64,000 nucleotides of DNA from positions 5,518,001 to 5,582,000 of the forward strand of contig OZ241829.1 in the NCBI GenBank assembly GCA_965202585.1, read 5' to 3'. This DNA is from Thalia democratica. Taxonomy: Eukaryota. Below the pieces are notes generated by a model. It was not told the DNA's origin. It was given only the letters and a program-made list of their open reading frames with translations, and made no database searches. How positions within the stretch are numbered: position 1 is the first letter of the stretch; each line of letters starts with the position of its first letter. The position numbers and the translations under genes are program-made. Below, in pieces: positions 29,601-58,998 of this stretch.

Positions 29601-32600
29601 ATCCAAAAGTTCTTAACAACAGTAACGTAATACCCCCTGTAAAAATTGATCAATACAATCCAGCAATTTGCAATCAAGGTAATTTTATGTAAACAATTTA
29701 ATGTAATCAAATGCAACTACTGCCATACTACCCTTTCTATAACGTAACTCCCCTGGTAATTTAAATTTGATTCCTAACTTCTTAAATGACCTAAAAAGTA
29801 TTTATTCATTGGACAACATATGCAAAATAAGCATTTTCCACAACTGTATAAGACAAAATTTTCCAAAGAATACTCAAGTTTTACTCAAAAACATAAGTAA
29901 AGTTTCCTAATTTTCAACTTAATTTAGTTGTTTTTTATTAACACATAACTTTTACTTTCAATTAGTATTAATAGTTTGGAAAAACGTCATCTAAAACTTT
30001 TTAAAAGTAATTAATGTTAAAATTGAACTTTTTTTTTAATTCAAACTTAATAAAAAAAATATTTTTAATTAAAAAAATTTTATAAGTCTTAATGTTTGTA
30101 ACACATAAACTAGAAACTATTTAAAACTTGCTATTAACCTTTTTATTTAACTTTACTATTATTACTTTTCTTATACGCTTTACCTTTACTTAAAACGTCA
30201 GTTCTAGATTTAAAACTTCTTTTTTTTAAACAAACATCTAGAAATTAATCCAAATGCTGTGACAAACTGTCAGAAGGAGCAGCATAAGTACCCAATAAAA
30301 AATAATGAGTTACATCAGGCTTCAAGTAAGTTACGTATTTATCTTCATTTGTAAGATTAATAGTTGTAAAAGATATAGTTTCATTCAGATATTCCTATAA
30401 TATTTAAGAAAATTAAAATTTTGTTAATAAGTGGCAAAAAGTTTTTCCAGGATATTCTTTTCATGCTTTTTTAAAACAGATCTTTCAACATAACCAAAAC
30501 TGCGGAGTGAAGAACATATAAATAAACTTTTTGTTTGAAGAAGAAATCATATTAAAATTTTTAATAGAACCAGAACTGTGGAGTGAGGAACACGTCAGAG
30601 CGTGGGTTGATTGGGTCATCGTGGAGTACGATCTACGTAATATGACGTCACAATTGTTTGAAGGTTTTGTCGGGGAGAGTTTGTGCGAACTGACAAAAGA
30701 TGATTTTATTGATATTACAAAAGATGAGAGGTCGGGAAAAATTTTTATTGATCATCTGAATTTTTTGAGAGGAGTTGAGAAAACAAGTAAGTTGTAGTTA
30801 TAATTAAAAATCAATAAGTTAAAGCTTTTAATGTGCAAATGTGTGAATAAGAGTTTTTGAGGTTTTTTTTTTGCAATAGGAAAAAGTTTATTATGTAGCC
30901 AAAGGTACTTTTGTACTGTACAATTATGTAAACTAGATGGTTTGCATGAAAGTACAGATAGTAGCATTTTAATAGTTTAAGAAAGTGACGAAATGTAACT
31001 TGTTTCAGATATAACAACAAAGCAACAATCTCTTCCAAGTTCATCACCTGCAATTTCACATCTTCAAAATCTAGTTGAGCGGAGATTTAGCGCATTTACA
31101 CCGGTTTCAAGCAAGGGAAATTCCCTTAATTGTTACCAAGACTCTGTAGCGAGAAGCAGAGTGGTCAATGGAAACTTAAGTTAGTGTTTTAATTAACAAG
31201 TATACGAAAAAATTGAAAATCCGCATGTTTTTGTTTGCGTGTTAAACAAACTTTTAAATTCTTAGTGCACTGTAGTGGTTTATTGAACAAAAACGAAAAA
31301 TTGCTCAAAATGTTTTGGTCAAGGATCTAGATACGCAAAAAGACCTCTCGGTCATCGAGTTGCAAATTTATAATGAGCTACAAATGAAAAAAAAAAGAAA
31401 AAATCTTTACAGTAAAAATTTAGACGACTCTTAAACGAAAAACTCTTTCTAAAATGAGACCATTAAACTTTAAAACTAAATTATAAAAAAATTATTTAAA
31501 TATCAACAAAAAATTTAAAATAATTTATATACCAGAGGCGTGTCTAGACATTTTTCAAAGGGGATTCACAATTTTTTTGTTTTAAATTTTCCACTTAAGT
31601 ATGCACTACCAGTTAAGTACGCATTGTGCGTACTACGCAGTATTTAGCCGAAAAGTTATGTTTTTAAAATGTTTTTTTCTGCTTAGAAATAAAAAAATAT
31701 ATATAAGTAGTATAAGAAAAATGTTATATTTTTATATATTATACTGTATTAAACTTAGATAAATTGAAACTAAAAGAATCAGATAAAAGTAATGAACTTA
31801 CAAATTGTATAATAAAACTCGTACCCGTTATTTAAGACAAATATATTAAATACAGTTCATTTAATTAACGAAAGTGGTATTATGATGAATATAGGTAATT
31901 AAAGATCAAAACTTACAGGTATTTTTAGTATATTATAATCATTGATTTAAACTTTGAAAAAAAAACAAATAAATCTATTGAATAATACAAAACTCAATAA
32001 AAAACCTTTAATATTTGTCGAAAATAAAATTGCAAATCAGTCAAATAAAACAATTGAAAGTATAATTTTTACGAGCATTATCATTAATTTTTATATTTTG
32101 TTTGGAGCTGAGTTAATAAAAAGCACAGCTGGAATAAAATTTTCTACGGTAAAAAAACACTTTTAAATTTTCAACTATCTAAAAATAACAGTAAAACAGA
32201 ATGTAAAATCTTGATAATAAATCATTTTTCATATTTTTTAGTAAAACATAAACCTAAGCTCTGTGCTGTTACTCCATACAATGTAAAAAAAATCCTTACA
32301 TTATTGAGCTAACATGTGAAATGAAAACTTTTTTATTTACGATACTATAAAAAAAATTATTTAAAATTAGTAATACACTTGTCTAAATAATAGACAAATA
32401 TGCTCAATGATATATTAACAAACTACCTACTTAAATAGTTTCAGTCAAAATAATCAAGATAATAACTATAATGAGAGTAAATAAAAAATGAATTAAAATT
32501 AAATTTAAGAAACTAAGCCAAGTTCTAAATTTGTTACTACTTAAAGATGTATTTTATAACAATGCATCACCAAGAAAATCAAAGTTCTTGAAAATATTTT

Positions 32601-35600
32601 AAAATTAAAAGTTACTAAAACTTGTAAAATAAACTAAATTAAACTTTTAGAAATAAAAGCCTTTAAATTTTTTAGCTAAACTAAGTTAATTAACAAACAC
32701 AAAGTAATATTCTGAAGTATATATGTACAAATTTTTTTATAAATATTAACTCCATGCTACTTGAAGTTTTTCAAATGATTACTTAGTAAATCTTAATAAA
32801 AAGTTTCCCAGAAAAAAAATGGTACTTTAAAACTTTTACCTATTATCACGTCACAATTAAAAATTTATTTTAAATCTATTTCAACTGGGCAAAAACGAGC
32901 AGTTTTGTTACGGAAACTTATAATCTTTCAGTGTTATAAATTTAACATTCATTATTCAAAGTTTATCAAATAACCGAAACAAAGTGAATAAACAACGATT
33001 TTAGTGATATTCTAAAAATCTTTTTTTACTTTTTTCTTTTTCTTTTTTTCAGGGGGTTCACAGGAAACAGGAAACCAGTCAAAACACGCCCCTGCTATGA
33101 ACACACATATATTTAACATTGTATACACATAAAGCATAAAATATATATTGTACTGTACTCAGTATAGTTCTGAGTTAATAAGGTTTTGTTTTTATACTAA
33201 TGTTTTAACTATAAATTTCTTCCATATCTACTTAACACAAGTTGTAACCCATTTTGAAAAACTCAGTGTCTTGTTGCTTTACATTGAGTTGGGTTTTTTT
33301 ATATTGCTAAAACACCAGTAACTTTAAAGTTTTTTTGGATTTATTGAACAAGTGGTCTGCATAAGTTGAAATGTTTAAATGAAACAAACTACATAATGTA
33401 ATAAAACTAATACACACTTTATGATTTTTTTTTGTAACAGATAATACCGCTCAACAAACAAAATGTAGTTCAGCAAGTTTGTTGAACTATGATTCGGAAG
33501 TTGATGATTACGCTAAATTCAAGCACACTGGTATGTTTGACATAAAAAGACTATTTACAGAATCCATAAAATTGTATAACTAATTACATATGTTTTGCTG
33601 TCCAAATAAATTTTTACGTTAAAACTACTTTGATTTTTTGAATAAATACACTGTATGTAAAAAAAATGAGTTTTTCTCTAGCTGTAGGGGCATAAAATGA
33701 CTTAAGATAACTATTGTTCTTTATCTTTTTTAAACTTAGAATCTCTAATTAACTTATAAAATCTTACTTTCAACTGATGATAATTTTTTTTTTCATTTTG
33801 ACGATTTGTTTTATTTTATTTGCACAAAAACATAAATAAAGCAATTTTGTAAAACAGTTAGAAGATTTAGCAACAAAGGAAATGCTCAGATACAGTTGTG
33901 GCAATTTTTACTTGAGCTTTTGAGTGATCCATCTAACTCATCTTCTATCGCTTGGGAAGGTAAATATATTTTTAATTGTTTTTAAATTACTATTAAAGTA
34001 ACTATTTTTTATTTACAAATTCCGTAAAAGTGTATGCGACATTAGTTCTATATTTTTTCCTTTAAAAAGTACAATGATCTTCTTTTTTAATACTCTCTTA
34101 TTGTGTAGTCTTTTTTGCTAAATAAAGTTTTCTAATAGTCTAATCTTGATTTCTTCTTCAGCTTACTTAATTTTATTTTACTAAAGTTTATCAACTACAC
34201 AAGTACTTACATATAATTAAAGATAATCCAAATTTTTTTTTTGAATATAATTTTATCTAATTTAGATTTTTTATTTAAACAGGAATGGACGGTGAATTCA
34301 AGATACATGATCCTATGGATGTTGCAAAAAGATGGGGAGAGAAAAAGAAAAGACCGAATATGAATTACGAAAAGCTTAGCAGGGCTTTGAGGTTAACATA
34401 TAAGCTTTATATTGTAATAATAATCTGTAATACTCCTGCTGTTTTACAAAAATGTATACAACGCATACAATATAGATTACTAATTTTATATGATCATATA
34501 TAATGTAAACATTTGTTATGTATGATATGTTTTATTAAACAAACGTTGTATTAACTGATTGATGATAAACTGATTAGAGGTAAAAATGAAATCACAAACT
34601 AATAAAATTATTTTTAGTGTAAATTTTACGAAACTAAGATAAACATTTAAAAAAATAACTTTGTCTGTTTAAAAATTTTGATCAAAGTAAAATTTAATAA
34701 TAAATATCTAGAACAGTTTTATTCTCGTAAAAAATTTTGAGCTGTATAAATACATAAAACTATATACATTGTCACAATTTTTATGTAGATTTACGAAATT
34801 GTTAAAAAAAACAAAAAAGTTATAGAATCTTTACTTTATTTGCAAATAAAAATCACACCCAAAAAGTGAAATAACACTTAAAACTTTTAGTTTTCATTAT
34901 TATTTTTTAATACTTTTTATTTTAAATGTTATATTTTTGTTCGATCTAGCCTATATAGATGTTCTATAAATTTAAATAAATTAATTACTGGGTAAATAGT
35001 TTAAACAAATGATTAATAAACCAAGATTATATATAACTAAATATATATTTATATATATATACTAATTACATAAAAAAAGGTTTATACCAACGTTTCGTAT
35101 GTGAGATACATTACCTGATATACTCATCGGTAAAGTTTCATCTTTTTGTGTTCGCGGCTTAATTTTACTTTGATTTAATATACAATTAAACTTAAACTAC
35201 GAACATTTCTAATACAACTTTTCAAAACTTTTCAAAATACATACATAAATTATAAAATTAACAAGATCAGTGTATTTTTCAAACTTAACTTGCTGTACAA
35301 AAACTTTCATTATTATAACGTCATAATACTAATAAAATTTTCTAATTCTAAATTTCTGGTAAAAATTGTTTATAAATTTTAGCTATACTGAAGAGCATAT
35401 GAGGTAATGTATCTCATGTACGAAACGGTGGTATAAACCTATTGTTTATTTATATAACCAAATAAATACTTAGCTCCAATTCAAATTGTCGAGTGCTATT
35501 GAACAAAACTTAAAAAAAAAACTAGTTATATTTAATTAATAGAGATAAATATAATATATAAAGTTATTAATACTTTAACATACAACTTGTAATCTCATAA

Positions 35601-36154
35601 AGCATATAAAAACGTTATAAAAATCACACTAAAAATATTTTAGGTACTACTACGACAAAGGCATTATGACGAAAGTAACTAGAAAGCGGTACACATACAA
35701 ATTCAATTTCAACACAATAACTATGCTACCTTCTGTTGGTGGGAATACAAGTAACCAACACAACGATGATCACATGTATAATTACTCATTGACTAATGCT
35801 TACAACTATCATGAGTTTGTCAAGCAGTCCTTGTTAGCGAGCTCTCAAGGTTATAATACAAGCAGTATGTCTGCAGGTACGTATTTTTTTTAATTTTAGA
35901 ACTTTGTGTCTCGGTTTTTCTACAACCCTATTTTCAGTGTTGCAACTGAAACAATAAACTTTCCAACAGGCTACAAACCAAGTAGCTTCCGAGGGTATTT
36001 CCCTAGAGTAGAAAGTGACCAATTAGGAGGTATAGGAGGTAGGGAGCAAGTAGGAGTGAAAGGAGGACAAATAGGAGTAAACGGAGGACAAGTGAAGTTA
36101 TTGGAGGGCAGTACATTTTACCCACAACTTCTTAGTAAAACTGATATTAGCTGA
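26632..36154 (+). CDS. ERG: ERG/FLI1-subfamily ETS transcription factor (PNT/SAM + ETS domains), 12 coding exons, 617 aa
   Basis: Exons 26632-26818, 27656-27803, 28204-28255, 28603-28802, 29105-29262, 30568-30786, 31009-31179, 33441-33530, 33858-33959, 34283-34391, 35644-35876, 35970-36154 all have GT-AG ends and matching phases, summing to 1854 nt. Motifs [22 protein letters not shown] (PNT) and [72 protein letters not shown] match ERG/FLI1. The symbol denotes the ERG/FLI1 group; N-terminal exon boundaries are less certain. Confidence 0.92.
30242..30325 (+). other. Candidate 84-nt symmetric (phase 1-1) cassette exon of the ETS gene
   Basis: CTAG| acceptor, open frame (E)[27 protein letters not shown], strong A|GTAAGT donor; same phases as the flanking introns. 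Confidence 0.5.
30568..30786 (+). CDS. ERG: PNT (pointed/SAM) domain exon of the ETS gene
   Basis: [22 protein letters not shown]...[17 protein letters not shown]...[10 protein letters not shown]; AG/GTAAGT boundaries. Confidence 0.92.
31285..31400 (+). repeat. Short dispersed (SINE-like) repeat copy with A-rich tail
   Basis: GGTCAAGGATCTAGATACGCAAAAAGACCTCTCGGTCATCGAGT...ATGAAAAAAAAAAG; mirrored at ~58240-58355. Confidence 0.65.
31516..32260. mobile_element. ~745-bp segment present only in the left arm, with a hAT-like end
   Basis: The right arm joins TCAACAAAAAAATT directly to CTGTGCTGTT; the segment has CAGAGGCGTGTCTAG at 31533, resembling hAT termini; no second TIR or TSD found. Confidence 0.5.
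33858..35876 (+). CDS. ERG: ETS DNA-binding domain, split over exons 33858-33959, 34283-34391 and 35644-35876
   Basis: [14 protein letters not shown]...[16 protein letters not shown] and KRYTYKF signatures. Confidence 0.95.
35078..35440. mobile_element. Intronic MITE-like element with ~60-bp imperfect TIRs
   Basis: AGGTTTATACCAACGTTTCGTATGTGAGATACATTACCT... is inverted relative to ...AGGTAATGTATCTCATGTACGAAACGGTGGTATAAACCT; mirrored at 54988-55338, so it predates the duplication. Superfamily not determined. Confidence 0.75.
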
Positions 36155-37651
36155 ATATTTTGAAAACGTGTACAAAAAAGTTTATGCTTTACTTAAAAAT
36201 AGGCCAATTTAGAAAGACTTTGGATATTTCACAAGTAGTCAATTTTTTTTTCTTTTAGGAAATACTTAACTAATTACAAAATGTAGCTTTAGAAAATTAT
36301 CATGTTTTAAACTTCTCAATAAAATTGAATTTTCCTCTGTAGTTAGATGATATAGAATATTGTAAGGTATTAGACAAATTGGGTTTAATAAAAGCACAAT
36401 ACTTTTAAAACTTTTGTCGTGAATATAATCTCAACTTATAGTCCTGATGTAAACAAGTTTAAAAAGTTATTGTTTAAGTTTAAATTCTAGCTTACTTTTG
36501 TTACAAACTAAGAATTATTTCGTTTATTTAAAAGAATTTTATAGCTACTGTCAAGTTATATTCATTTCTTAAAATATTGACATGTATGCATAACTTACTA
36601 ATAGATTTGAATTTTCCTGTTCGTTTTTTTTTTTCAGATAGTAATGTGTTATACTTGTTTTAAACATAATATATTGATGACGAAGATTAAATGATTCGTT
36701 AGTTGAGTGTTTGCTAAAAAATATGTTAAAAATGTAAATTATCAAAAATATTTTTTCTTGAACTTCTAAAAACATTTTAGCTATAGGTTCATTTTATTGA
36801 CTTAATTTTTGTGCAAACTATGAAACAAATATATAACATAGTTTGTTGGTTGACCTTATGTAATTGTTTTGTCTTTAAGTTTAAATTAACATAAGTCTTC
36901 GATTTTCTTTACATATATTTAATATGTTGCTAGATAATAAATATTATGACAAATACTTTACAAAAAAAATTTTTTAATGATTAAAATAAAATCAAAACAT
37001 TTTTAAAGATACTTAAGTTATGTAAAAAAGACTTGTTATCAACAAGAATCTAAAACACTTGTTAATAAACTTTTATTTCAAAGTGATAGATACCAAAAGA
37101 TTTCTAGTTTCAATGATAAGTTGACTCCTTTGTTGATGAAAAATAAGTACACTCTAATAAATCAGTGTAATATTTGTATTTGCTAAGCGGTCAGCGTTTA
37201 TAATTTTTTTTATAACATTAAACTAATAATTTTTTTTCATTCGAAATAAAATATTTGTACTTATAAGAGTTATTCTATTTGTGTTTTATAATATATTTTA
37301 ATACATTTAATTGTCCTTTTTTAGTATGAGGTAGTCACTTTTGTAAGTCTTTATAGCTGTTAAGACTCAACTTATAACTTTAGACTTTGAAATAGTGTCG
37401 ATAAACCTGTAGTGGTCAACACTTTTTAAGGAGTCGGCGAGTAAGCAAATTTTATAGATCTTGTTTTCATTTATTTTTTTTAATTCCTTTACCCCTAACC
37501 TACCTTACCCAAACATATTAAAAGCTAATAAATAATTTTATTGTAAATTAATTTAAATAAATTATGAAAATATAAGTATTTGCTGAATCAGCATATATTA
37601 GGAGAATCCCTTAACATTTCAGAAAGACTCCATTTTTTAACTGTCGATACA

Positions 37652-38252
37652 GGAACGGGTCAAAATTGCACGACGAAAAAATCGCAAAAGGGCACAAAAT
37701 TGCACGAAAATGCTTTTGCACAAAGCCAAATTTGAAACATGGGTCACGAGTTAAAATTTTTGCACGAGTTACAATTTTGCACGGAGGGTCATTTTTGCAC
37801 GAGAGAAAATATATGAAAAAAAGCAAAAAAAAAAAAAACTAAAAGATAAATAAAATATTAAAAAGAAAAAAAATTACTGATCGAGGGTAAGGGTTAGGGG
37901 TGAAAATCATAATAAAAATGAAAATAAAAATAACTAATAAAAATTATTATTATTATTATTATTATTTAAAAAAATAAATAAAAACTAATTAATTTAAAAG
38001 AAAAAAAGCTACCGAACGAGGGTACGGGTTAGAGGTATTAGTGAAAGTAAAAAAAAACATTAACATATAAAAATAAGTTATCGACCGAGGGTAAGGGCTA
38101 AGGGTAACAGTGATAATAAAAAAACCTTAACATAAAAAAAAGTCAAAAAAAAAAATCAACTCGTGAAAAAGTTTCTCCAAGAAATTTTGTCCCCGCGTGC
38201 AATTTTGTCCCTCGTACAATTTTGTACGCTCGTGCAAATTTGACAGCTACCC
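37652..38252. mobile_element. MULE-like element (copy C)
   Basis: Perfect 9-bp TSD GTCGATACA (37643-37651 / 38253-38261); TIRs GGAACGGGTCAAAATTGCACGA / TCGTGCAAATTTGACAGCTACCC; three internal GAGGGTA(A/C)GGG(T/C)TA units. Confidence 0.9.
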
Positions 38253-38550
38253 GTCGATACATATGAAATAATGTAAGTTTAAAATCACGAAAGCCAAATA
38301 AAAACTTCGTGATAATTTACAGTATATTTTAAACGACAATAAAATTTTAGTTTATTACAGTAGCAACGCTTGGAGTTTGTTAGGAAGTGCAAAGAATTTA
38401 GAGTTATCAAAAGACTCTTAATTTGTATTTTTAGAAACTTATTTAAAAAAACAGAAATTAAATATTTACAAAAAATCATTTGTAAACTAGCGTTTATTAC
38501 AAGAAAAAATTAACAGCTTTATATTATAACTATGTTTATTTAGTTTTTAT

Positions 38551-38577
38551 GTGCTCCACCCCACGCGACGCCCCTAG
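38551..38577. mobile_element. Solo TIR remnant of the hAT MITE family
   Basis: CCACGCGACGCCCCTAG matches the right TIR of 6875-7559; decayed mirror copy at ~53311-53338. Confidence 0.45.
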
Positions 38578-39879
38578 TTGTTAATAGTTGTTTTTATGCG
38601 CAGGAAATGGCTTTTTTTTAATACATTATCAAAATATACAAACTATTCACTTTTAAATTTGTGCAGTTAAAAGTTAAGAACAATTTAATTACCTACTATA
38701 ATTTAAAACTAGTTACTGACGTTTACATAACGTTACAAATATTATCTTTCCTTAATTGTTTTATCAGTTTTTTTAATAAATTTTTAAAATGGATTTAAAA
38801 AATAAATTTACATACTTATTATGACTTTTAAAAACTTAAATGTTTTCTACGAAAAAGTTATTCTGTTTTAATTGTAAATTGACAATCATTTATAAACAGT
38901 TCAATTTAAACATAATGATCTGTATTTATTTTTTTTTAATTAGCAAATTCCTAAGAAATCTGGTTTTAGACAAACAAACTGTATGTCATTCATTATAGCA
39001 TAGTGCAAATGTAATTTTAGTTACATAAACTTAATAGTATCAACCTTTATACATTTTAAAGTAGTCTAGATAAAATACTTAATTGTTTTAAATATTTGTT
39101 TTTGTTGTATTCAGTTAATTAATATCATTTGGAAAATAAATAATTTGATATCACTCTTTACTTAAACTTTATAATCTATAGAGTAACTAAATTTTATTTC
39201 TTAAACATTAGATGAATAATAGTTTTGTCTATAAAAAAGTTACAAATCATTTAGGTAATAAACAGAAAAAAATTTGTTGTTTTGTTTAATTTTGCTTTTT
39301 ATCATTATAAAACAAACTAAAGATTTATTTATTTAATATGTTACTAATTTGTAATTAATTTCTAAGTTCAACAGTTTTTGTTTTCAGTTATGCATTTGAT
39401 TAAGTTTTTATAAATTTAACTTGTAGTTTTGAAATTTTAGGCATGGAAAAATAATAAAGTTGAAAACACTTAAAGTATTATTTAGTTTAGACCAAAGTTG
39501 TAACTAACTTATAGAGTATTATAATAGTTACTCTAATTTTAGACGGTTTAATGCAATTAAATAATGAATGCTACTTTTTAAATAAAATCAAAAACTCTGG
39601 TTTAATTATAAGTTATTTTCAGTTATTTACTGAAAAATGCTTAAACAGCTTCTTGTAAAATATATTTGTCAAATTTAAGATTTCAATAAGATAGTACTTC
39701 AATAACATAGTGATCTTTTACTTAAAATTATTGTAGCTCTGATAAAATTCCAGTATGTCTTTTGTTTTATATTACTGAGTTACTTTAAAAACGTTTTTGA
39801 AACTATTTATTTGTGTATCAAAAGTTACATACAGCCCATACATTTTTTTAGCATCTTCATTTACTCTGAAACAACAAAA

Positions 39880-40761
39880 ATGTCTGCAATGTCTTCAGAT
39901 GAGCAGTGCAAAGAATCAAACAAAATATTTGCCGAAATTTCCGACAGAAAGTTCTACCGACTGCTGGACAGAATGGATGGATTTTCATATCAAGATCCTG
40001 AATATAAAGCTGCAATGTTACCAAATAAACATTCAGAGCTTTATAAGGATGCTGAAAAGGTGTGGAATGAAATTCGTGATTCAATCTTTTCAGAGGAAGA
40101 AAAACTATCAGGAAATACTGATCAACTACAAGTAGCTAACAGAAATTCTGGTCTAGAAGAGGACTTTTCTGAACAATCTGACGATACAGAAGAAAATCGA
40201 ACTTTTGTAGATGCTCCGCTTATTAATGATGATCTAGAAGATGTTCTTCCGGTTAAAAAAGATGATGAAATTAAAGGGCTTCTCGAGTTAATTGATTTCA
40301 TAGAGAATAAAAACAATCTGACTACATCATTTGACATTATTCGGAATGAAGATGAAAATACCATCATTGGTGAAACAACAAGAAAAAAATGTACCCGGAA
40401 AATATTAGCTAAATCCAATTCAAATGTACTTTTAAAAGTAAAAGGTAATGTTAAGAAATCAGAAACAAAATTCAAAGTCAAAGCAAATTCTGCAAGAATA
40501 AATTGTGCTGATAGAAATATTAATGCAGCTACGGAAAATCGAATGACAAATCTTGACCTTGATGGTATGTTAGAGACACTTCCAAATGAAAGAAAAGATG
40601 CAGCAATTGAAGCACTCAAATACTTAGTTAGCTACTTGAAAACTAAAAACAATTGCACTATTTCTATTGACTGTTCCAAACAAAAGTATTCAGTTTTTCG
40701 AAACACTACATTGAAAAAATTGTACGAAAAAATGTCATTAAAAGCTAAGGTGACTGAATAA
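39880..40761 (+). CDS. Intronless orphan ORF, 293 aa (290 aa from the second ATG at 39889), acidic middle, basic C-terminal half
   Basis: Long open frame in ~80% AT DNA, AAAAATG context, upstream TTTTTTTAG acceptor-like site; open in both arms; no recognisable domain. Confidence 0.75.
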   Translation: MSAMSSDEQCKESNKIFAEISDRKFYRLLDRMDGFSYQDPEYKAAMLPNKHSELYKDAEKVWNEIRDSIFSEEEKLSGNTDQLQVANRNSGLEEDFSEQSDDTEENRTFVDAPLINDDLEDVLPVKKDDEIKGLLELIDFIENKNNLTTSFDIIRNEDENTIIGETTRKKCTRKILAKSNSNVLLKVKGNVKKSETKFKVKANSARINCADRNINAATENRMTNLDLDGMLETLPNERKDAAIEALKYLVSYLKTKNNCTISIDCSKQKYSVFRNTTLKKLYEKMSLKAKVTE

Positions 40762-41724: not shown

Positions 41725-41855
41725 ACCAGTGACCGTCAAGGTGTCACTGGTGTACACTAGTGTACACTAGTGTACCAGTGTCCAATACAAACTATTTTTG
41801 GCGTGCACGAAATTTTAAGGGTACGCGAAACTCATTTAAGGGTGCACGAAATTTT
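41725..41855. repeat. Hairpin + TGTACACTAG tandem palindromes + GTGCACGAAA repeats; probable transposon end
   Basis: 9-bp stem ACCAGTGAC/GTCACTGGT (41725-41751), CTAG at 41757 and 41767, three ~19-21-bp repeats; mirrored at ~50088-50212. Confidence 0.6.
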
Positions 41856-46140: not shown

Positions 46141-46571
46141 TTTCAGCTAGTTCCGTGTTTGAAGGAAGAATTATCGTATCTGGTGGACGGAATGGTAATG
46201 TAACACTAAACACTGTAGAAGCATATGACCATGCGGCTCGTACATGGTCAAGAATGCCGAGTATGGTTGAAAGAAGACACCATCACAAATCAGTTGCACT
46301 AAAAAACAAACTGTTTCAAATTGGTGGTTTAAACAATTGTGAAGTTTTTGATTCCAATACTGAAGTGTTTACTTTGTTGATAGAACATTACCAAAATTGT
46401 TTTAGCATGTTTAGCAATGCTATCGAAGCGATCACAGTTGGTAGCAAGTTATTTGTTTTTTGCCACGGAGGTAAAGTTATGGTTTACGACCTTGAAATCG
46501 ATGAATGGTCAGAAAAAAGCTGTTTTGCAACAAGAAATATTGCGAGGTTTTCCTGCATAAATCACCTGTGA
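46141..46571 (+). pseudogene. Inverted partial copy of the kelch gene (C-terminal ~3.5 repeats)
   Basis: SASSVFEGRIIVSGG...WSEKSCFATRNIARFSCINHL*; near-identical to the left copy, with a 1-bp deletion near the C-terminus. Confidence 0.9.
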
Positions 46572-49500
46572 ACTTATAAGTGATAGAAATCTATACAACT
46601 ACAAAAAAGACATGGTACTTTGTTGTTGCCTTGTTTGATTTTCATCAGTCTGAGCTTCACAATGTGTAAACTTCGTGTGTAATGAATTTGCTGAAGTCGT
46701 TCTATTTCTATTTTGTTTTTATGCTACATTTCGATTACTTCTTATTCTAAACTAATAACAAAATTAAAGTAATAAAATTCCTTGAAAATATATTAACAAT
46801 ACAGATTGCAACAAATTGTTTTGTTTTATTTAATGTAGTTTTAAATGCAACTTTTTGTTAAAACACAAGTGCTGATTAAATGGACGTTTATCTTTTAATT
46901 TAATTTCTTAGAGTTCGAATGACTAATAATGATTTTTTTAAATCTTTACGTTCAGTTGAAAATGTCTTCAGCATTTTTTTCTTTTATTTAGGTTATTTTT
47001 CTTCACAGACTCCGTTTTACACAAGCCGATTGCTAAAATGTGTTGTCTATGTTGTTTTTATTTATATGTCTTGATAAAGTGTTAGCTATATTAGTGATTT
47101 TAATAAATTTCACTCTAGTGTATACGTGTTGTCTGTATATAAGGTGAACAGTAACTTAAAAAGAAAGTTTGGATTTTTCTATTAATAGAAAGTAAATAAA
47201 GTTCATAGTAACAACTAAGTGTAGAATATTAAATTTTAGGAAAAATAAATGTAAACCACTTCATTTTACATTCTTAATCATACTATAAATGTTGTTATTT
47301 CACATTAATAAGTAAGCAAAATTATAATGTTTATAATTTTGGTTATTGAAACAAAAACAAAGTTAACGCTAGTTAACGTTTTTATTTATGTGTGAAAAGG
47401 TTAACATACTTGCTTTATGACGTAACAAAAAGCATGGACCTCTTAAAAATAATTGTCGACTCATCCTCATCAGACAGGCATGAAGGCAGTCAAAATAATT
47501 AAAGTTCATGGAATTAGTAAAAAAATTGTTCATCACCAAGACATAGGTAGACCATTTCAATCATTGACGAACCTAATTGTTTTCTTTTAGAGTTAAAAGT
47601 AGCTAGCAATCTTAGTAAATAAAGTAAATAATATGATAATAATAATAAATAAAGTAAGCAATTATAGCTTACTTTAAATTTACAAACTCTTTGACTTTTA
47701 TAGCTTTTTTCTTTCATTATACTCTACTGTCAGGTATTTAATTAAAATTACCATTAGTTGTTCAGCTTAGCAAACAAGCTTTTTCACTAGTGGTTTATTT
47801 AAATTACTTTTTAGTTGGACAAGTTAACAAACTATGCTGATAGATCATTCTTATAAGAGAAAGTTTTGTTCAATTTAAATATTGATTTTTTCTGCATTGA
47901 TTAATCTCTTCTAAGTAGAAAAAATAAGTGTATAAAGATTACAGAGGATTTTACAAGTCTTTCTTATTTTTCCAATTGGTACAAGGCTGTTTTTTATGTC
48001 ATTAAACACTCAAGTCTTCGAAAAATTAGCGTTTAAAAACTTTTAATAAGCTATCTTAATTAGGCAGTTCTACTACATATACAAACCAAATTTATCTTTT
48101 AGTAAACATAATTCATTTTAAATTATAATTAATAAGTCTATAAGTTGCATACTTTCAATAAGTAAATCATTTCTTAACTAAAATAGTATATATCAGATTA
48201 AGAGTTCTTGTTATCAGTTAAAGTTTGTAAAATATCATTCACCAAGCAAATGTTGTTCACAAAGTTATTTTTATATAAGACCACTAAAACATTCTCCTTG
48301 ATTTCAAAATTTTAAAACTCAAAATCTAGTCGAGTAAACTTAAGTTTTTTTTTAAAGTGTTTTGATGAATTGAATTCTAATATAAATATAAAAGCTTTGT
48401 ATACAGTAGTAATCAAAAACCTTGCCCGCAGATCGAATCTGACCCGACCGGAACTATGTGGCTTGTGACGTATTTTTAGGTTAAAAAATGTTAATGAAAA
48501 TATTACAGTTTTATCGCATGTTTGAAAAAATGCTTCTAGTGTATCAGTTATTTAAAAGATAATAAAACTACAACAAACAGTTTTTTAAAAGATGTTTTAA
48601 CTACAAGTTTGCGTCAAAAAATAGTCCCATTAAAAAAAAAGGTTTAAATTTACATTGTTATGTGAGTATTTTTTCTAAGAAAAACTGTACCGTAATCTAC
48701 AACAATCTACAGACGCTGACCTAGATCTAGTCTTATAAAAATATATAACATCTTATAAAAGAAAATTGTCAAATATTTATAGAAAAAATATTAAATGCTA
48801 TGACTGTGAAAATTATACTTAGTTTTTAACAATTTGTTTTATTATCTCATAACTTATATTAAAACTTACCAACCATCGCGCAAGCATTAACTTTTTTTTT
48901 TGTTGTTTTTGTTTAAGGCTTTATAAAGTTTATTAGTTTATTTATGATTTCGGTCGGTCTATGTTAATTTTCGTAAGAAAAGTAAATGATAATAGTAAAC
49001 ATTTTTAACACTTTTCTTGTTAACTTTTTGTTTTCATTATTTCAGACATGACAAAAAACGCTAAAAGTAAATACAATAAATTTAGTTTAGGCACATTTAA
49101 AACTTTTGAAATTTATCTAGTAAAGGGTTTTCTAGTTATTATAATTATAACACGTATCAGTTAACTTAACGTATATCAAATTATAATCTACATATGATAT
49201 ATATTGAATGCCAAGTTGTTTTTTTTTTAATGAATACAAAACTGATGTTTATACTAATAAAAACTTATCAATATTTTTCAAGCCGTGTTAGCCTCCAAGC
49301 TAAAATACAAAAAAATCTTATTGATACAAAGCTGTACAATTTTTTTTATAAGGTACAAAGCTGTTTGCCCTTTCATAAATTAGCTATGATCTGGCTTGTT
49401 ATAACTGCAATGAGTTAGTCTGTAAAATGCAAGCTATAAAAGAAAATACAGCAGGCCGTTGATTTTAAAAATAAAACCATCTTTTGTTATAAAAACATTA

Positions 49501-51151
49501 ATTTCATTGAGGTTTTTACGCAAATGTACCGAAAAGTTTGGGGAAATCACCGCCCGGTTTGAGAATATTCCCTGAATCGAAACTTTATATTTAAAACTAA
49601 TGAGAAACTATTCATTTAGCACTAAAAACGAAAATAAGACTTATTATCGGCACTTTTGCAAATGTTTAATTTCTGATTAAGTTTATATATTCTGACGGAT
49701 ATGTTGTTACTTTTAATGTACTTTAGATGTGACAGCATCTGATTGTGACTAAATAAGTTATTCAAAACTCATATGTTGTTTGTAAAGTGCTTTAGAATAC
49801 GATTTTAACAGCGTAAAGTATTACACTACTATTTGAATTATTTATCTTTTTGATACTATTTGTCTAATTCAAATAGCATACACGTTTAAAATACTTCTTT
49901 CAAATGTTTATAAAAACACGTACATTCCAAAAATTTACTATGCTAATTAGGTAGTTCGAAAAAATAACAACTTTTGAAATTAAAAAAAAAACTTTGAAAA
50001 TTTTTGTTTTTAAAAACTTGTTGTAGTTTGTAATACAATTTAAACCAAGTTTAGGAAAAATTGTAAATAAATTTATTAATCAAAATTTTGTGCACCCTTA
50101 AATGAGTTTCGCGTATCCTTAAAATTTCGTGCACGCCATAAATAGTTTGAATTGGACACTGGTACACTAGTGTACACTAGTGTGCACCAGTGACACCTTG
50201 ACGGTCACTGGTATAGAATATAACAGAATTAAAAAAATAGTTAACGTAATAAGATCTAACTGCGTACTAAACAACTTTAAATTTAAATACAGCAAAAACA
50301 TTTCCTTTTTCATACTTTATTTTAGCGTTTTTTGAATTTCAATTAACCTTTAATTTAACCTTTAATATTAATTTATGTTGAGCAAACATGTGATAAAGAT
50401 GTAACATAATTAATTTATAATCGTACTAAATTTATTTATTACATTTTACTGCCGAATATAAAGATTTGTTAATGAAACAGAAGCCATTAGACAAAAAAAA
50501 AACCAAATCATTAATTTTTCTTGCTAGAAGTGGATAAACAAAAAGTAAATGTTTATATAAAAAAAACAAGGTGTTTGTAGTATAATAACGATGTTTTCCG
50601 ATCATCATGCAAATATTAAACTTAGATCATATTTATATCTTGCTAAAAATTAGTAAATATGCTAATAAGAAAAAAAATTGTTTTATTTAATATGCATTTA
50701 TATAGTTTTGTAAACTTTCAATTACTACTTTTAATAAAATTCAGTTTTTTTTTACACAGGTTGTAATTTATTGTTAACATAAATATATACAACATATAAA
50801 TGTGCATTTTACTTTGTGTTAGTTTTAAAATTACATGTTACATTTTAACGAACACAAGTGATGTACAATATTTCAAGTATAACAATGACAAGTTATAAAC
50901 TAGTTAAGAAACCAAATACTTCCATAAACAAAAAAATCAAGTTAAATTCAAGTTAAAAACTTAGATTATAAATCATCGACAATTGAGTAAATTAATGCTT
51001 AATGCATGGTAACAAAAACTAGTAGAAGTTATAAATGTTTTTCTGTATATTTTTTGTTGCAGTCATTTTTATCTGAATAAGTATAACTTTTTACTTACAA
51101 ATTTATAAACATAAAATTTAAAAATGTTTAACAGTCTAGCGCTTGCAACAT

Positions 51152-52024
51152 TTATTCAGTCACCTTAGCTTTTAATGACATTTTTTCGTACAATTTTTTC
51201 AATGTAGTGTTTCGAAAAACTGAATACTTTTGTTTGGAACAGTCAATAGAAATAGTGCAATTGTTTTTAGTTTTCAAGTAGCTAACTAAGTATTTGAGTG
51301 CTTCAATTGCTGCATCTTTTCTTTCATTTGGAAGTGTCTCTAACATACCATCAAGGTCAAGATTTGTCATTCGATTTTCCGTAGCTGCATTAATATTTCT
51401 ATCAGCACAATTTATTCTTGCAGAATTTGCTTTGACTTTTAATTTTGTTTCTGATTTCTTAACATTACCTTTTACTTTTAAAAGTACATTTGAATTGGAT
51501 TTAGCTAATATTTTCCGGGTATATTTTTTTCTTGTTGTTTCACCAATAATGGTATTTTCATCTTCATTCGGAATAATGTCAAATGATATAGTCAGATTGT
51601 TTTTATTCTCTATGAAATCAATTAATTTGAGAAGCCCTTTAATTTCATCATCTTTTTTAACCGGAAGAACATCTTCTAGATCATCATTAATAAGCGGAGC
51701 ATCTACAAAAGTTCGATTTTCTTCTGTATCGTCAGATTGTTCAGAAAAGTCCTCTTCTAGACCAGAATTTCTGTTAGCTACTTGTAGTTGATCAGTATTT
51801 CCTGATAGTTTTTCTTCCTCTGAAAAGATTGAGTCACGAATTTCATTCCACACCTTTTCAGCATCCTTATAATGCTCTGAATGTTTATTTGGTAACATTG
51901 CAGCTTTATATTCAGGATCTTGATATGAAAATCCATCCATTCTGTCCAGCAGTCGGTAAAACTTTCTGTCGGAAATTTCGGCAAATATTTTGTTTGATTC
52001 TTTGCACTGCTCATCTGAAGACAT
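51152..52024 (-). CDS. Second copy of the orphan ORF (290 aa from MSSDEQ)
   Basis: Open frame with six amino-acid differences from the left copy; the first ATG is mutated to ATT, the second is retained. Confidence 0.7.
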   Translation of the reverse strand: MSSDEQCKESNKIFAEISDRKFYRLLDRMDGFSYQDPEYKAAMLPNKHSEHYKDAEKVWNEIRDSIFSEEEKLSGNTDQLQVANRNSGLEEDFSEQSDDTEENRTFVDAPLINDDLEDVLPVKKDDEIKGLLKLIDFIENKNNLTISFDIIPNEDENTIIGETTRKKYTRKILAKSNSNVLLKVKGNVKKSETKLKVKANSARINCADRNINAATENRMTNLDLDGMLETLPNERKDAAIEALKYLVSYLKTKNNCTISIDCSKQKYSVFRNTTLKKLYEKMSLKAKVTE

Positions 52025-53635
52025 TGCAGAAATTTTTGTTATTTCAGAGTAAATGAAGATGCTATGAAAATGTATGGACTGTATGTAACTTTTGATACAC
52101 AAATAAATAACTTCAAAAACGTTTCAAAGTAAGTCAGTAATATAAAACAAAAGACATACCGGAATTTTATCAGAGCTATAAAAATTTCAAATAAAAGATC
52201 ACTCTTTTATTGAAATACTATGGTATTGAAATCTTAAATTTGACAAATATATTTAACAACAAGCTGTTTAAGCATCTTTTTGTAAATAACTGAACATATC
52301 TTATAAATAAACCAGAGTTTTTAATTTTATTTAAAAAGTAGCATTCATTATTTAATTGCATTAAAACCGTCTAAAATTAGACTAACTGTTATAATATTCT
52401 ATGAGTTAGTTAGTACTTTGGTCTAAACTAAACACTACTTAAAGTGTTTTCAACTTTATTATTTTTCCGTGCCTAAAATAGTTAAATTTACAAATACTTG
52501 ATCAAATGCATAACTGATAACAAAACTGTTGAACCTAGAAATGAATTACAAATTAAATAAATAAGTCTTTAGTTTATTTTATAAAATAATAAAAAGCAAA
52601 ATTTAACAACACAAAAACTATTTTGTTGTTGTTTATTACCCAAATGATTTGTAATTTTTTTTATACAAAACTACTATTTACCTAATGTTTAAGAAATAAA
52701 ATTTTAGATACTATATTGATTATAAAGTTGAAGTATAGAGTGATATCAAACTATTTATTTTCCAAATGATTTTCATTAACTGAATACAACAAAAACAAAT
52801 ACTAAAAACAATTAAATATATTATCTAGACTACTTTAAAATGTATAAACGTTTATACTATTAAGTTTATGTAACTAAAAACAACATTTGCACTATGCTAT
52901 AATGAATGACGTACAGTTTGTTTGTCTAAAGCCAGGTTTCTGTAGAATTTGATAGTTTTTAAGAAAACATTTAAATACAGATTATTTTGTTCAAATTGAA
53001 CTGTTTATAAACGATTGTCAATTTTTAATTAAAACGGAATAACCCATCCGTAGCAAACATTTAAGTGTTTGATAGTAATAATAAGTATGTAAATTCACTT
53101 TTAAAATTTTAAAAAGAAAACTAATAAAACAATTAAAGAAAGACGATGTTTGTAACGTTATGTAAATGTCAATAACTCGTTTTAAATTTTAGTAGGTAAT
53201 TAAATTGTTGTACACTTTTAACTGCACAAATTTAAAAGTAATTATTTTGTATACTCTTATAATGTATTGAAAAGAGGTCACTCCCTGGGCATAAGAACAG
53301 TTATTAACAACCAGGAGCATCGCGTGGGATAGAGCACGTAAAAAATTAATAAACATAATTATAATATAAACCTGTTATTTTTTTAATAAACGCTAGTTTA
53401 CAAATGATTTTTAGTAAGTATATTATATCTGTTATTTTAGATTACTTTTTAAAAATACAAACTAAGGGATTTTTTTGATAACTCTAAATTTTTGCACTAC
53501 CTAACAAACACCAAGCGTTGCTACTATAATAAACTACAATTTTATTGTCGTTTAATATATACTATAAATTATTACATAGTTTTTATTTGCCTTTCGTTCT
53601 AACTAACATTGTTTAATATGTTCATATGTATCGAC

Positions 53636-54074
53636 GGGTAGCTGTCAAATTTGTATGAGCGTACAAAATTTTACGAGGGACAAAATTGCTTAGAAAATAT
53701 TTTTTACGAGTTGATTTTTCTTTTTTTTATGTTTAGTTTTTTTTTATCATCACTATTAACTTTAGCCCTTACCCTCGTTCGATAACTTATTTTTAAATGT
53801 TTAATTTTTTTTACACTTTCACTGATACCTCTAACCCTTACCCTCGATCGGTAGCTTTTGATTTCTTTTATTTAATTAGTTATTTTTTATTGTTTTTTTT
53901 TATTAATAATATATTTTATTAGTTTTTTTTTTAATTTCATTTTTACTATCACTTTTACCCCTTACCTTTACCCTCGATCAGTAACTTTTTTTCTTTTTAA
54001 TGTTTTGTTTATTCATCTTTTTTTTTACACATATTTTCTCTCGTGGAAAAATGACCCTCTGTGCAAATTTGTAA
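53636..54074. mobile_element. Mirror of MULE-like copy C, truncated by a ~1.4-kb deletion
   Basis: One TIR and the TSD (TGTATCGAC, 53627-53635) are retained; the other end is fused to the ETS 3' region. Confidence 0.8.
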
Positions 54075-54270
54075 TATAACAAATATAACTAAAAAGGAAA
54101 ATTCTATATCATTGAGAAGTTTAAAACATTATAATTTTCTAAAGCTACATTTTGTAATTAGTAAAGTATTTCCTAAATTAAAAAATTGACTACTTGTGAT
54201 TTATAAGTCTTTTTAAATTGGCCTACTTTTAAATAAAGCATAAACTTTTTTGAACACGTTTTCAAAATAT

Positions 54271-57200
54271 TCAGCTAATATCAGTTGTATTAAAAAGTTG
54301 TGGGTAAAATGTACTGCCTTCCATTAACTTCACTTGTCCTCCTTTAACTCCTACTTGTCCTCCGTTAACTCCTACTTGGTCCCTACCTCCTAAATGGTCA
54401 CTTTCTACTCTAGGGAAATACCCGTATGAGTCTCGGAAACCACTTGGTTTGAAGCCTGTTGAAAAATTTATTGTTTCAGTTGCAACACTGAAAATAGGGT
54501 TGTAGAAAACCGATACACGAAGTTTCAAAATTAAAAAAATATATACGTACCTGCAGACATACTGCTTCTATTATAACCTTGAGAGCTCGCTAATAAGGAC
54601 TGCTTGGCAAACTCATGATAGTTGTAAGAATTAATATACGGGTAATTGTACATGTTATCATGATTGTGTTGGTTACTAGTATTCCCACCAACAGAAGGTA
54701 GCACAAATATTGTGTTGAAATTGAATTTGTATGTGTACCGCTTTCTGGTTACTTTCGTCATAATGCCTTTGTCGTAGTAGTACCTGAAAACATTTTTAGT
54801 GCAAATTTTATAACGTTTCTATATGCTTTATGACATTACAAGTTGTATGTTAAAGTATTAATATCTTTATATAATATAGACATCTGTATAAATTAAATAT
54901 AACTAGTTTTTTTTTTAAGTTTTGTTCAACAGCACTAGACAATTTGAATTGGAGCTAAGTATTTATTTGGTTATATAAATAAACAATAGGTTTATACCAC
55001 CGTTTCGTACATGAGATACATTACCTCATATACTCATCAGTAAAGCTAAAGTTTATTAACAATGTTTAACAGAAATTTAGAATTAGAAAATTTTGTTAGT
55101 ATTATGACGTAGTAATAATGAAAGTTTTTGTACAGCAAGTTAAGTTTGAAAAATACACTGATCTTTGAAAAGTATTGAAAGATTGTATTAGAAAAATTAT
55201 TAAACTGTTCGTGTGCGTGGTTTAATTTTAATTAAAACACTAAATCAAAATAAAATTAAGCCGCAAACACATAAGTAAAACTTTTCTGATGAGTACATAA
55301 GGTAATGTATCTCACATACGAAACGGTGGTATGAACCTTTTTTTATATAATTTAAATATATATATATATATTTAGTTATATATAATCTTGGTTAATTAAC
55401 CATTTTTTTTAAACTGTTTACACAGTAATTAACTTCATTCAAATTTACAAAACATCTTTATAGGCTAGATCGAACAAAAATATAATAATTAAAATAAAAA
55501 GTGTTGACAAATAATAATGAAAACTAAAAAAGTTATTTTACTTTTAGGGTGTGATTTTTATTTGCAAATAAAGTGAAAATTCTATAAATTTATTTTTAAA
55601 CAACTTTGGAAATCTACATAAAAATTATAAATATGTATATAGTTTTATATATTTTTACAGCTCAAAATTTTCTATGAGCATAAAACTGTTGTAGATTTTT
55701 ATTGTTAAATTTTACTTTGATCAAAATTTGTAAATAGACAAAGTTCTTCATTAACATGTTTATCTTAGTTTTGCAAAATTTACATCAAAAATAATTTTAT
55801 AACTTTGTTATTTCCTTTTTACCTCTAATCAATTTATCATCAATCAGTTAATACAACGTTTGTTCACTAAAATATATCATACATAACAAATGTTTACCTT
55901 ATATATGATCATATAAAATTAGCTATCTATATTGTGTACGTTGTATACATTTTTGTAAAACAGCAGGAGTATCACCGATTATTATTACAATATAAAGCTT
56001 ATATGTTAACCTCAAAGCTCTGCTAAGCTTTTCATAATTCATATTGGGTTTTTTCTTCTTCTCTCCCTAACTTTTTGCAACATCCTCAGGATCATGTATC
56101 TTGAACTCACCGTCTATTCCTGTTTAAATAAAGAAACTAAATTAGGTAAAAAAAATTTAGAAAAAATATTTGGATCTGATATCTTTAATTGTATGTAAGT
56201 ACTTGTGTAGTTGATAAACTTTAGTAAAATAAAATTAAGTTAGCTGAAAAAGAAATCAAGATTAGACTATTAGAAAACTTTTTCAGCAAAATAGCCTACA
56301 TAATAAGAGGGTATTTAAAAAAAAGATCATTGTACTTTTAAAAGGAAAAAGAAATAGAAATAATGTCGCATGCACTTTTATGGAATTTGTAAATAAAAAA
56401 TAGTTGCTTTAATAATAGTACAAAAACAATCAAAAATTTAATTACCTTCCCAAGCTATAGAAGATGAGTTAGACGGATCGCTCAAAAGTTCCAGTAAAAA
56501 TTGCCACAATTGTATCTGAGCATTTCCTTTGTTGCTAAATCTTCTATCTGTTTAACAAAATTGCTTTCTTTATGTTTTTGTGCAAACCAAATAAAACAAA
56601 TCGTCAAAATGAACAAATAATTTTATCATCAAGTTCAAAGTAAGATTTTAAAAGTTAATTTGAGATTTTAAGTTTAAAAAAGATAAAGAACAATAATTAT
56701 CTTAAGTTATTTTATGCTCCTATCGCTATAGAAAAACTATTTTTTTTACATACACCGTATTTATTCAAAAATAAAAGTAGTTTAGTTTTAACGTAAAAAA
56801 TTTATTTAGACAGCAAAAAATATTTAATTAGTTATACAATTTTATGGATTTTTTAAAGTAGTCTTTTTATATCAAACATACCAGTGTGTTTGAATTTAGC
56901 GTAAGCATCAACTTCCAAATCCTTGTTCAACAAATTTGCTGAACTACATTTTGTTTGTTGAGCGGTATTATCTGTTACAAAAAACATCATAAAGTGTGTA
57001 TTGGCTTTATTACATTATGTAGTTTGTTTCATTTAAACATTTCCACTTATGCAGACCACTTGTTCAATAAATCCAAAAAAAAAATTAAAGTTACTGGTGT
57101 TTTAGCGATATAAAAAAACCCAACTCAATGTGAAGCAACAAGGCACTATGTTTTTTAAAATGGGTTACAACTTGTGTTAAGTAGATATGGAAGGCAATTT

Positions 57201-58998
57201 ATAGTTTGAACATTAGTATAAAAACAAAACCTTATTAACTCAGAACTATACTAAGTAGAGTTCAATATATATTTTAATTTGATACAATGTTAGATAGATG
57301 TGTGTATATAACAGGGGCGTGTTTTGACTGGTTTCCTGTGAACCCCCTGAAAAAAATGAAAAAAAATGAAAAAACGATTCTTAGAATATCACTAAAAACG
57401 TTCTTTATTGACTTTGGTCGGTTTTTTGATAAACTTTGAATAATGAATGTTGAATTTATAACACTTAAAGGTTATAATTTTTTATAACAAAAATTCTCGT
57501 TTTTCCCCAGCTAAAATCGATTTCAAATAAAATTTTAATTGTGACGTGATAATAGGTAAAAGTTTTTAAGTACCATATTTTTTCTGGAAAACTTTTTATT
57601 ACGATTTACTAAGTCAATCATTTGAGAAGTATATATTATATTTCTACATAAGTTTGTACATATATACTTCATAATATTACTTTGTGTTTGTTAATTAACT
57701 CAGTTTAGCTAAAAAATGTAAAGGCTTTTATTTTTAACAGTTTAAATTAGTTTATTTTACAAGTTTTAGTAAGTTTTAATTTTAAAATCTTTTTAAAAAC
57801 TTTGATTTTTATATTGATCCATTGTTATAAAATACATCTTTAATTGGTTACAAATTTAGAACTTGGCTTAGTTTGTTAATGTTAATTGTTATTAATTTTT
57901 CATTTGCTCTCGTTATAATTATTAGCTTGACTATTTTGACTGGAACTATTTAACTAGGTAATTTGTTATCATTGAGCATACTTTTCTATTATTTAGACAA
58001 GTTTGTTACTAATTTTAAGTGGTTCTATTTTCTTTAGTATCTTAAGTAAAAAAGCTTTCATTCCACATGTTAGCTCCATAATGTAAGGAATTTTTCTTAC
58101 ATTGTATATAATAACAGCACAGAATTTTTTTGTTGATGTATAAATATATTTTTTTTCAAATATTTTAGTTGTAAAGTTTAATTGTCTCATTTTAGATAGA
58201 ATTTTTCATTTTAGAGTCTAAATTTTGACTGTAATTTTTTTTTTCTTTTTTTTTCATTTGTAACTCATTATAAATTCGCAACTCAATGATCGAGAAGTCT
58301 TTTTGCGTATCCAGGTCCTTAAACCAAAACATTTTGAGCAATTTTTCGTTTTTGCTCAATAAACCACTACTGTCCATTAAGCATTTAAAAGTTTTTCTGA
58401 CACACAAACAAAAACATGCGGATTTTTTATTTTTTCGTATACGTGTTATTTAAAACACTAACTGTAGTTTCCATTGACCACTCTGCTTCTCTCTACAGAA
58501 TTTTGGTAACAACTTAGGGAATTTCCCTTGCTTGAAACCGGTGTAAATGCGCTAAATCTCCGCTCAACTAGACTTTGAAGATGTGAAATTGCAGGTGATG
58601 AATTTGGAAGAAATTGTTGCTTTGTTGTTATATCTTAAACAAGTTACATTTTGTTACTTTCTTAAACTATTAAAATGCTACTACCTGTATTTTTATGCAA
58701 ACTATCTAGTTTATATAATTGTACAGTACAAAAGAACTTTTGGCTACATAACAAATTTTTTCCTATTGGAAAAAAAAATCTCAAAAACTCTTATTTACAC
58801 ATTTGCACATTAGAAGCTAAAAGTTATTAATTTTTAATTATAACTACAACTTACTTGATTTCTCAACTCCTCTCAAAAAATTCAGATGATCAACAAAAAT
58901 TCTTCCCGACTTCTCATCTTTGGTGATATCAATAAAATCTTCTTTTGTCAATTCGCACAAACTCTCCCCGACAAAACCTTCAAACAATTGTGATGTCA
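54271..58998 (-). pseudogene. 5'-truncated ERG/FLI1-like paralog with a nonsense codon in the ETS domain
   Basis: Exons 58855-58998 (half PNT), 58463-58633, 56882-56971, 56446-56547, 56011-56119, 54551-54783 and 54271-54455 retain splice sites; KRWG became KS*G (TAG at 56067-56069); N-terminal exons are absent from the window. Confidence 0.88.
54988..55338. mobile_element. Mirror copy of the intronic MITE
   Basis: Same ~60-bp TIR pair as 35078-35440. Confidence 0.7.

Follow-up and report, generated by a model that had tools for sequence, protein, structure and literature searches.

The question raised by a 64,000-nucleotide stretch of Thalia democratica DNA (assembly GCA_965202585.1, contig OZ241829.1, positions 5,518,001 to 5,582,000 of the forward strand; hereafter the window) is how a 28-kb structure made of two long gene-bearing arms in inverted orientation came to exist, and how it has lasted. 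An initial annotation made from the letters alone had described it as an old, stabilised palindrome, in a genome of non-bilaterian type, whose persistence was unusual; the label non-bilaterian would be wrong if the genome is that of a salp, a planktonic tunicate. The analyses reported here indicate that it is very probably a genuine inverted segmental duplication, or quasi-palindrome. As such, the locus is a further example of inverted segmental duplication with partial homogenisation, a known kind, and not a stability puzzle. The window contains no N and has a G+C content of 25.4%, the genome being very AT-rich.

The inverted repeat was found where the initial annotation had placed it, repeat search, self-BLAST and global alignment being in agreement. 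In a repeat search of the window, colinear inverted pairs run inward from 30643/58998 to 45744/46141, leaving the innermost arms 396 nt apart. Minus-strand self-BLAST resolved the match into four colinear blocks (30638-31516, 32260-36348, 37769-42584 and 42574-45744, against 59002-46141; E = 0 for each), and when the right arm was reverse-complemented and aligned globally to the left one, 12,706 aligned columns were 93.2% identical. The parts of the structure are as follows.

30638..45744, plus strand: left arm, 15,107 bp, the original copy in its native context, continuous with the upstream 5' exons of an ETS gene and with a kelch open reading frame (ORF) that runs into the spacer.
45745..46140, minus strand: spacer, single-copy, 396 bp, 33% G+C, all of it coding (kelch blades 1-2).
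46141..59002, minus strand: right arm, 12,862 bp, the inverted copy, cut within exons at both ends.
46140/46141: centre junction between spacer and right arm, represented by the probe 46111..46170, each of whose 31-mers crosses the junction.
31512..32255: left-arm-only block of 744 bp, for which left-arm insertion and right-arm deletion are both possible.
36349..37767: left-arm-only block of ~1,419 bp adjoining a dispersed short-repeat region, for which insertion and deletion are again both possible.

The arms differ in length by 2,245 bp, of which 2,163 bp lie in the two left-arm-only blocks, in line with the earlier claim that arm-specific indels account for most of the difference. Terminal inverted repeats were looked for in the two blocks and none was found, nor were there other copies of the blocks within the window, apart from the neighbouring short-repeat family. 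This dispersed family has four copies with 75-87% identity (1236-1554, 15266-15504, 37758-38150 and 53718-54010), of which the last two occupy homologous positions in both arms; one copy lies at the end of the ~1.4-kb left-arm-only block. Of the transposons said to be shared by the arms, one dispersed repeat family at matching places was thus borne out. Both arms are made up of exons and introns of the host and, this family aside, their sequence has no further copies in the window. A giant transposon with long terminal inverted repeats, or a foldback element, was ruled out, the arms being pieces of host genes cut inside exons. Just past the right arm, direct repeats with 72-82% identity were observed (59531-59716/62549-62730 and 61263-61938/62758-63456), which suggests that the copy borders, at its outer junction, on DNA that is repeated or derived from transposons.

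The gene content of the arms distinguishes source from copy. At its outer end, the left arm begins within an ETS gene.

26632..36150, plus strand: ERG/FLI-class ETS gene, apparently intact (exon ends read from ORFs).
26632-28812, plus strand: 5' exons of this gene, open and outside the palindrome.
30522-30794, plus strand: PNT exon of this gene, with a Pfam SAM_PNT match; the arm boundary at 30638 falls inside it.
~33860-33960, 34279-34392 and 35640-35890, plus strand: Ets exons of the left arm, with Pfam Ets matches in the ORFs 34279-34500 and 35633-35890.
54534-54818, minus strand: Pfam Ets match in the right arm.
54274..59002, minus strand: truncated ETS copy, starting inside the PNT exon and without 5' exons.

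Among solved structures, the closest matches to the Ets exon are ERG, FLI1 and FEV, which indicates that the ERG/FLI label is right; the duplication of half of such a gene, proposed from the letters, was confirmed by the Pfam SAM_PNT and Ets matches. Since the arm boundary lies within the PNT exon and the 5' exons lie outside, the right arm has only the 3' half of the gene. The translation of the first Ets exon (~33860-33960) is identical in the right arm. Elsewhere in this copy, alignment of the arms with their translations showed that a conserved tryptophan of the Ets domain is replaced by a stop codon at 56067-56069.

At the centre, a second gene, of the kelch type, is cut.

45305..46140, minus strand: kelch ORF truncated at the junction, with Pfam Kelch repeats; the propeller is present and the N-terminal BACK part is missing.
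46141..46571, plus strand: right-arm kelch copy comprising the last ~3.5 blades (~145 residues), an open frame with Pfam Kelch repeats and a changed C-terminal end.

The minus-strand kelch frame spans the left arm from 45305 and the entire spacer, to 46140. As 5' exons of the ETS gene precede the left arm and no other, and the kelch frame passes unbroken out of this arm into the spacer, the left arm and spacer are the native context, and the right arm is a secondary inverted copy of 30638-45744 joined at 46140 inside a kelch coding exon. The ancestral order was the ETS gene (plus strand), a small lineage-specific gene described below (plus strand) and the kelch gene (minus strand). Since it took in just half of the ETS gene and the tail of the kelch gene, the copy was defective from the outset.

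What the join did to the kelch gene was examined by comparison with its relatives. About 120 relatives of the kelch ORF were found in marine metagenome assemblies, the best with 53% identity; most are ~360-485 aa long, with a BACK domain ahead of the propeller. In a tblastn comparison with the window, their alignment starts with their own residue ~181, at position 46135, and runs down to 45314; their first ~175 residues, the N-terminal third, found no match in the window, 59003-64000 included. With these N-terminal ~175-180 residues lacking any match in the window, the sequence distal to the spacer was lost. As no BACK or BTB match follows the right arm, a model in which the copy was simply inserted into a kelch gene left otherwise intact was rejected within the window. 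The ancestral N-terminus was also sought in a near-identical full-length relative, but none was recovered, the top protein match being the one with 53% identity. The join at 46140/46141 thus beheads the kelch gene, and the missing part was not merely displaced past the copy. The initial annotation had listed an ERG/FLI half, a small ORF and a kelch gene as duplicated; the former two stand, and for kelch only the last ~145 residues are duplicated, the remainder lying in the single-copy spacer.

Between these two genes, both arms carry a small gene that is intact in each.

39880..40761, plus strand: left copy of the small gene; translation from its first ATG gives 293 aa; the full ORF of 316 aa spans 39811-40761.
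51152..52024, minus strand: right copy, open; the full ORF of 316 aa spans 51152-52102.

A Pfam search of the 316-aa ORF returned no family. The predicted product is acidic and rich in Lys, Glu and Asn. Both copies are open and differ at 10 amino acids (97% protein identity); in the right one, a Met-to-Ile change has removed the first ATG, and another ATG lies three codons downstream. The gene had been called an orphan ORF, a description no longer appropriate given five relatives in marine metagenome assemblies (82, 66, 59, 58 and 52% identity; 181-297 aa; no Pfam family). Relatives at 52-82% identity argue that the gene is real and lineage-restricted, rather than a chance ORF. Its dN/dS of 0.45 derives from only 11 changes, too few to use.

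The distribution of differences between the arms was then considered. A likelihood change-point in arm divergence was located at left-arm position 39851, dividing the arms as follows.

30638-39850: outer zone, 680 mismatches in 6,850 columns (9.9%), that is, 90.1% identity over ~9 kb.
39851..45744, partner 46141-52062: inner zone, 186 mismatches in 5,856 columns (3.2%), that is, 96.8% identity over 5.9 kb.
42028..42628, partner ~49310-49909: divergent island in the inner zone, ~600 bp, 8.5% divergent (91.5% identity).

Beside the centre, arm divergence is 2-4% over most intervals. In a scan statistic, the densest 600-column stretch of the inner zone (41883-42482, overlapping the island) contained 52 mismatches, whereas permutations gave at most 39 (p < 0.0005), and a perfect run of 313 bp was also observed (p = 0.005). 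Outside the island, the divergence of inner non-coding DNA is 2.84%, versus 1.75% for coding DNA, so that coding constraint is not the source of the identity step. Duplication in two steps was ruled out as its cause, since it would not leave an island as divergent as the old zone within the young zone of arms whose colinearity is strict. The simplest reading of the step, together with this island in an otherwise homogenised zone, would be that gene conversion between the arms affected most of the inner 5.9 kb. The earlier view of a genuine long inverted duplication carrying parts of genes is upheld and, with outer arms diverged by ~10%, the structure is neither a fresh event nor a read-level fold-back artefact.

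Taken together, the best explanation, held with moderate confidence, would be a single episode of fold-back or template switching, after which the arms drifted and were partly converted. An inverted copy beside its source, a single-copy spacer that continues the source, breakpoints internal to exons and distal loss are the anatomy on which this reading is based. A single break, or a stalled or collapsed fork, would have occurred within the kelch exon at ~46140 and would have been repaired by fold-back or template switch, with priming on the complementary strand 396 bp back. Some 15 kb would then have been copied in reverse up to the PNT exon, where a second switch or join would have connected the copy to DNA beyond the 5' part of the kelch gene, with loss of that part. 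The arms would have drifted to ~10% divergence, and later arm-to-arm conversion would have brought the divergence of most of the inner 5.9 kb back to ~2.6%, leaving the 600-bp island unconverted.

Whether reads carry the centre join was assessed in four public sequencing runs: X1 and X3, which derive from the same sample; X2, from a second sample with another organism label; and X4, a marine metagenome. Contigs of these runs were placed on 43000-48900 with a likeness cut-off of 97%, which hides more distant alleles, and the 60-mer 46111-46170 was looked up across runs in an index that samples three of its 31-mers. In run X1, three of the three sampled junction-spanning 31-mers were present. 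The same run has a reference-like contig over 46044 (depth 62), and its sole contig over 45769-45889 (depth 97) differs from the window at six places, at three of which X3 agrees (depth 98). X1 is probably other than the assembled haplotype and, as its contig differs from the window at six places at full depth, it provides independent support for the junction. The initial annotation had named as its refutation that no single molecule would span the centre and that arm depth would be half the genome average; this refutation fails, junction-spanning 31-mers being present in independently assembled X1 reads, and an invention of the assembler is very unlikely. A search of JGI metagenome contigs with a junction 25-mer gave no match and was uninformative.

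Several observations weigh against a simple duplication that is old and fixed. The read evidence consists of short k-mer contigs, and their word depths are too uneven, and the variants too dense, for copy numbers. Junction words were absent from X3 (none of the three sampled), although it comes from the same sample as X1, and X2 was not among the runs in which these words came up. One X3 contig (record 21, depth 40) covers 46014-46135 with the variants 46020G, 46026A and 46044C and then continues into 194 nt unlike the right arm; a contig of X2 (record 9) carries the same three variants. A junction-less form of the spacer therefore exists in two samples, including the junction's own. In addition, over 46843-48171 the arm found in X2 shows 23 differences to the right arm and ~37 to the left, the two arms differing from each other at 30, distances that fit poorly with a history of simple duplication and clock-like drift. 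Finally, no microhomology was demonstrable at the junction, where any would be absorbed in arm ends that have since diverged.

These observations can be read in more than one way. The junction-less form may be an ancestral allele, making the palindrome polymorphic, or it may be a close kelch paralogue. The latter is plausible because every junction-less contig falls within sequence that codes for kelch, and because 45569-45602 stands at ~8-10 times the surrounding depth. In this stretch of ~30 bp of kelch coding sequence, word depth reached 740-1,050x in all three animal runs, neighbouring bins having ~60-150x. The stretch also makes up most of what was found in X4, and it looks like a nucleotide-level motif common to many kelch paralogues. 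As for X2, its arm carries the right-arm letter at ~22 of 30 arm-diagnostic places and the left-arm letter at at least 7, with ~15 private changes. This can mean that the contig is the orthologue of the right arm, the palindrome being older than the split, or that the two arms descended from different old haplotypes. In X2, a right-arm-like arm was followed to ~48.5 kb with poor coverage of the left arm, a pattern confounded by the 97% cut-off, by bubble-popping and by kelch paralogues. Contigs of X1 and X3 link right-arm position 48358 to its mirror position 43547 in the left arm through 39 extra letters, and a contig of X2 links 48833 to 43325 through 35; both links look like a small local variant resembling a hairpin, or like the insertion, at matching positions of the arms, of an element whose ends are inverted. 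The word stabilised, used in the initial annotation, is accordingly too strong: with a junction-less spacer form in the junction's sample and in a second one, the palindrome may be segregating rather than fixed.

The strongest competitor holds that the palindrome is a young segregating variant whose arms came from two already-diverged haplotypes, through template switch or exchange between homologues, so that their divergence would be old polymorphism and not a measure of the age of the palindrome. It draws on the coexistence in one sample of the junction-less spacer (X3, depth 40) and the reference-like contig (X1, depth 62), with the same variants in X2, on the finding of junction words only in X1, on an X2 arm that differs less from the right arm than the left arm does, and on an inner-zone arm divergence of ~2.6%, similar to the 1.7-2.6% seen between samples. 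The outer 9 kb, however, with 9.9% divergence, many indels and the two large blocks, exceed the at most 2.6% found between samples (a level from which the 97% cut-off would hide distant alleles), the ETS copy of the right arm has decayed to a stop codon, and the junction-less contigs may belong to the paralogue considered above. On balance this explanation is rather unlikely. The clear polymorphism of the species, and the lack of junction words in X3 and X2, could be taken to favour an assembly artefact in which two haplotypes of a single-copy locus were joined head to head, the caveat raised in the initial annotation itself. Such a join is very unlikely: the junction 31-mers occur in an independent k-mer assembly of X1, the sequence has no gap or N, and the ETS copy of the right arm is truncated and carries a stop codon. 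Moreover, homology ends at matched points (30638/59002) inside an exon, with unrelated flanks on both sides, which is not what a misjoin of haplotypes produces. That outer divergence of 9.9% is above the between-sample level is a weaker point here, given the alleles hidden by the 97% cut-off.

A different kind of explanation would have the palindrome kept by selection, either because conversion preserves the pair of small genes, as in palindromes of sex chromosomes, or because read-through transcripts form a long hairpin RNA that yields small RNAs against the large kelch family. Both copies of the small gene are open, with 97% identical protein and relatives elsewhere, the identity step starts at this gene, and both kelch fragments are still open frames in a multi-copy family. 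Against this, a dN/dS of 0.45 on 11 changes proves nothing, inner non-coding DNA was homogenised as well, and the locus was not demonstrated in any RNA run, nor was promoter or small-RNA support obtained. Selection for the palindrome is thus highly improbable, and the single fold-back or template-switch event with later drift and partial conversion continues to be preferred.

Elsewhere in the window, two internally repeated regions were observed. Long open frames on both strands at 6877-7308, rich in Ser, Arg and Asn and built of units of ~45-90 bp, represent either a minisatellite or a repetitive coding exon. The block at 10273-10846, with overlapping minus-strand open frames of 140-176 aa rich in His/Phe/Cys/Thr/Arg motifs, is probably a tandem repeat rather than a gene.

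The persistence of the structure is to be seen against what is known of inverted-repeat instability. With an Alu inverted repeat in yeast, lengthening the spacer from 12 to 100 bp cuts recombination 300-fold, and recombination between inverted repeats falls exponentially with divergence, even a single mismatch near the centre having an effect (PMC10164571). The instability literature concerns near-perfect repeats with very short spacers, and, given a 396-bp spacer and arms that are 3-10% divergent, persistence of the present locus is to be expected. The earlier statement that it is unusual is not supported in the light of these two features, both of which suppress instability (PMC10164571). 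Under the fold-back or template-switch reading, spacer and diverged arms would make hairpin or cruciform formation rare, and no function of the palindrome would be required.

If this reading is right, one inverted duplication in a single step produced an ETS copy that is dead, gave a young gene a spare copy and beheaded the kelch gene; the locus would also be a clean case of patchy arm-to-arm homogenisation without known sex linkage. In thaliaceans, several repair genes are reportedly missing, XRCC4 and BRCA1 among them (PMC13746493). It is conceivable, if doubtful, that palindromes of ~30 kb with short spacers are a regular mode of gene duplication in salps, perhaps through the lost double-strand-break repair genes, and that the present locus is a possibly polymorphic member of this class with an ancestral junction-less allele. 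We speculate that loss of XRCC4 and BRCA1 channels breaks into fold-back or template-switch repair, followed by arm-to-arm conversion. Should salps carry many such palindromes and lack both classical end-joining and BRCA1, these loci would record the replacing repair pathway, and a junction-less allele, if true, would let the breakpoints be read against ancestral sequence.

Among known systems, the closest anatomical parallel comes from human germline fold-back inverted duplications. All 21 sequenced cases have a single-copy spacer, of 766-70,466 bp, and usually lie beside a deletion (Hermetz et al. 2014, PMC3907307); inverted microhomology of 2-8 bp was found at 13 of the junctions (PMC3907307). 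Like them, the present locus has adjoining inverted arms, a short unique spacer continuing the original arm, and missing sequence after the spacer, here the 5' part of the kelch gene. Unlike them, its spacer of 396 bp is below that range and its arms measure 13-15 kb, as opposed to hundreds of kb to Mb; the event was, in addition, interstitial and old, with no telomere, translocation junction or microhomology readable. Fork stalling and template switching (FoSTeS) and microhomology-mediated break-induced replication (MMBIR) provide a replicative template-switch route to inverted duplications. The locus resembles duplications of this type in its two sharp breakpoints in unrelated exons, the inverted copy beside its source and a possible small deletion, whereas the 3-10% divergence of its arms hides any junction microhomology or templated insertion. 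Palindromes P1-P8 of the human Y chromosome and those of the X have arms more than 99.9% identical and intact gene pairs. The locus shares with such sex-chromosome or ampliconic palindromes long arms and a short spacer, and its pattern of divergence would fit arm-to-arm conversion such as theirs; it differs from them in arms that are 90-97% identical (93.2% overall) and in that two of its three genes are fragments, only the small gene being intact in both arms.

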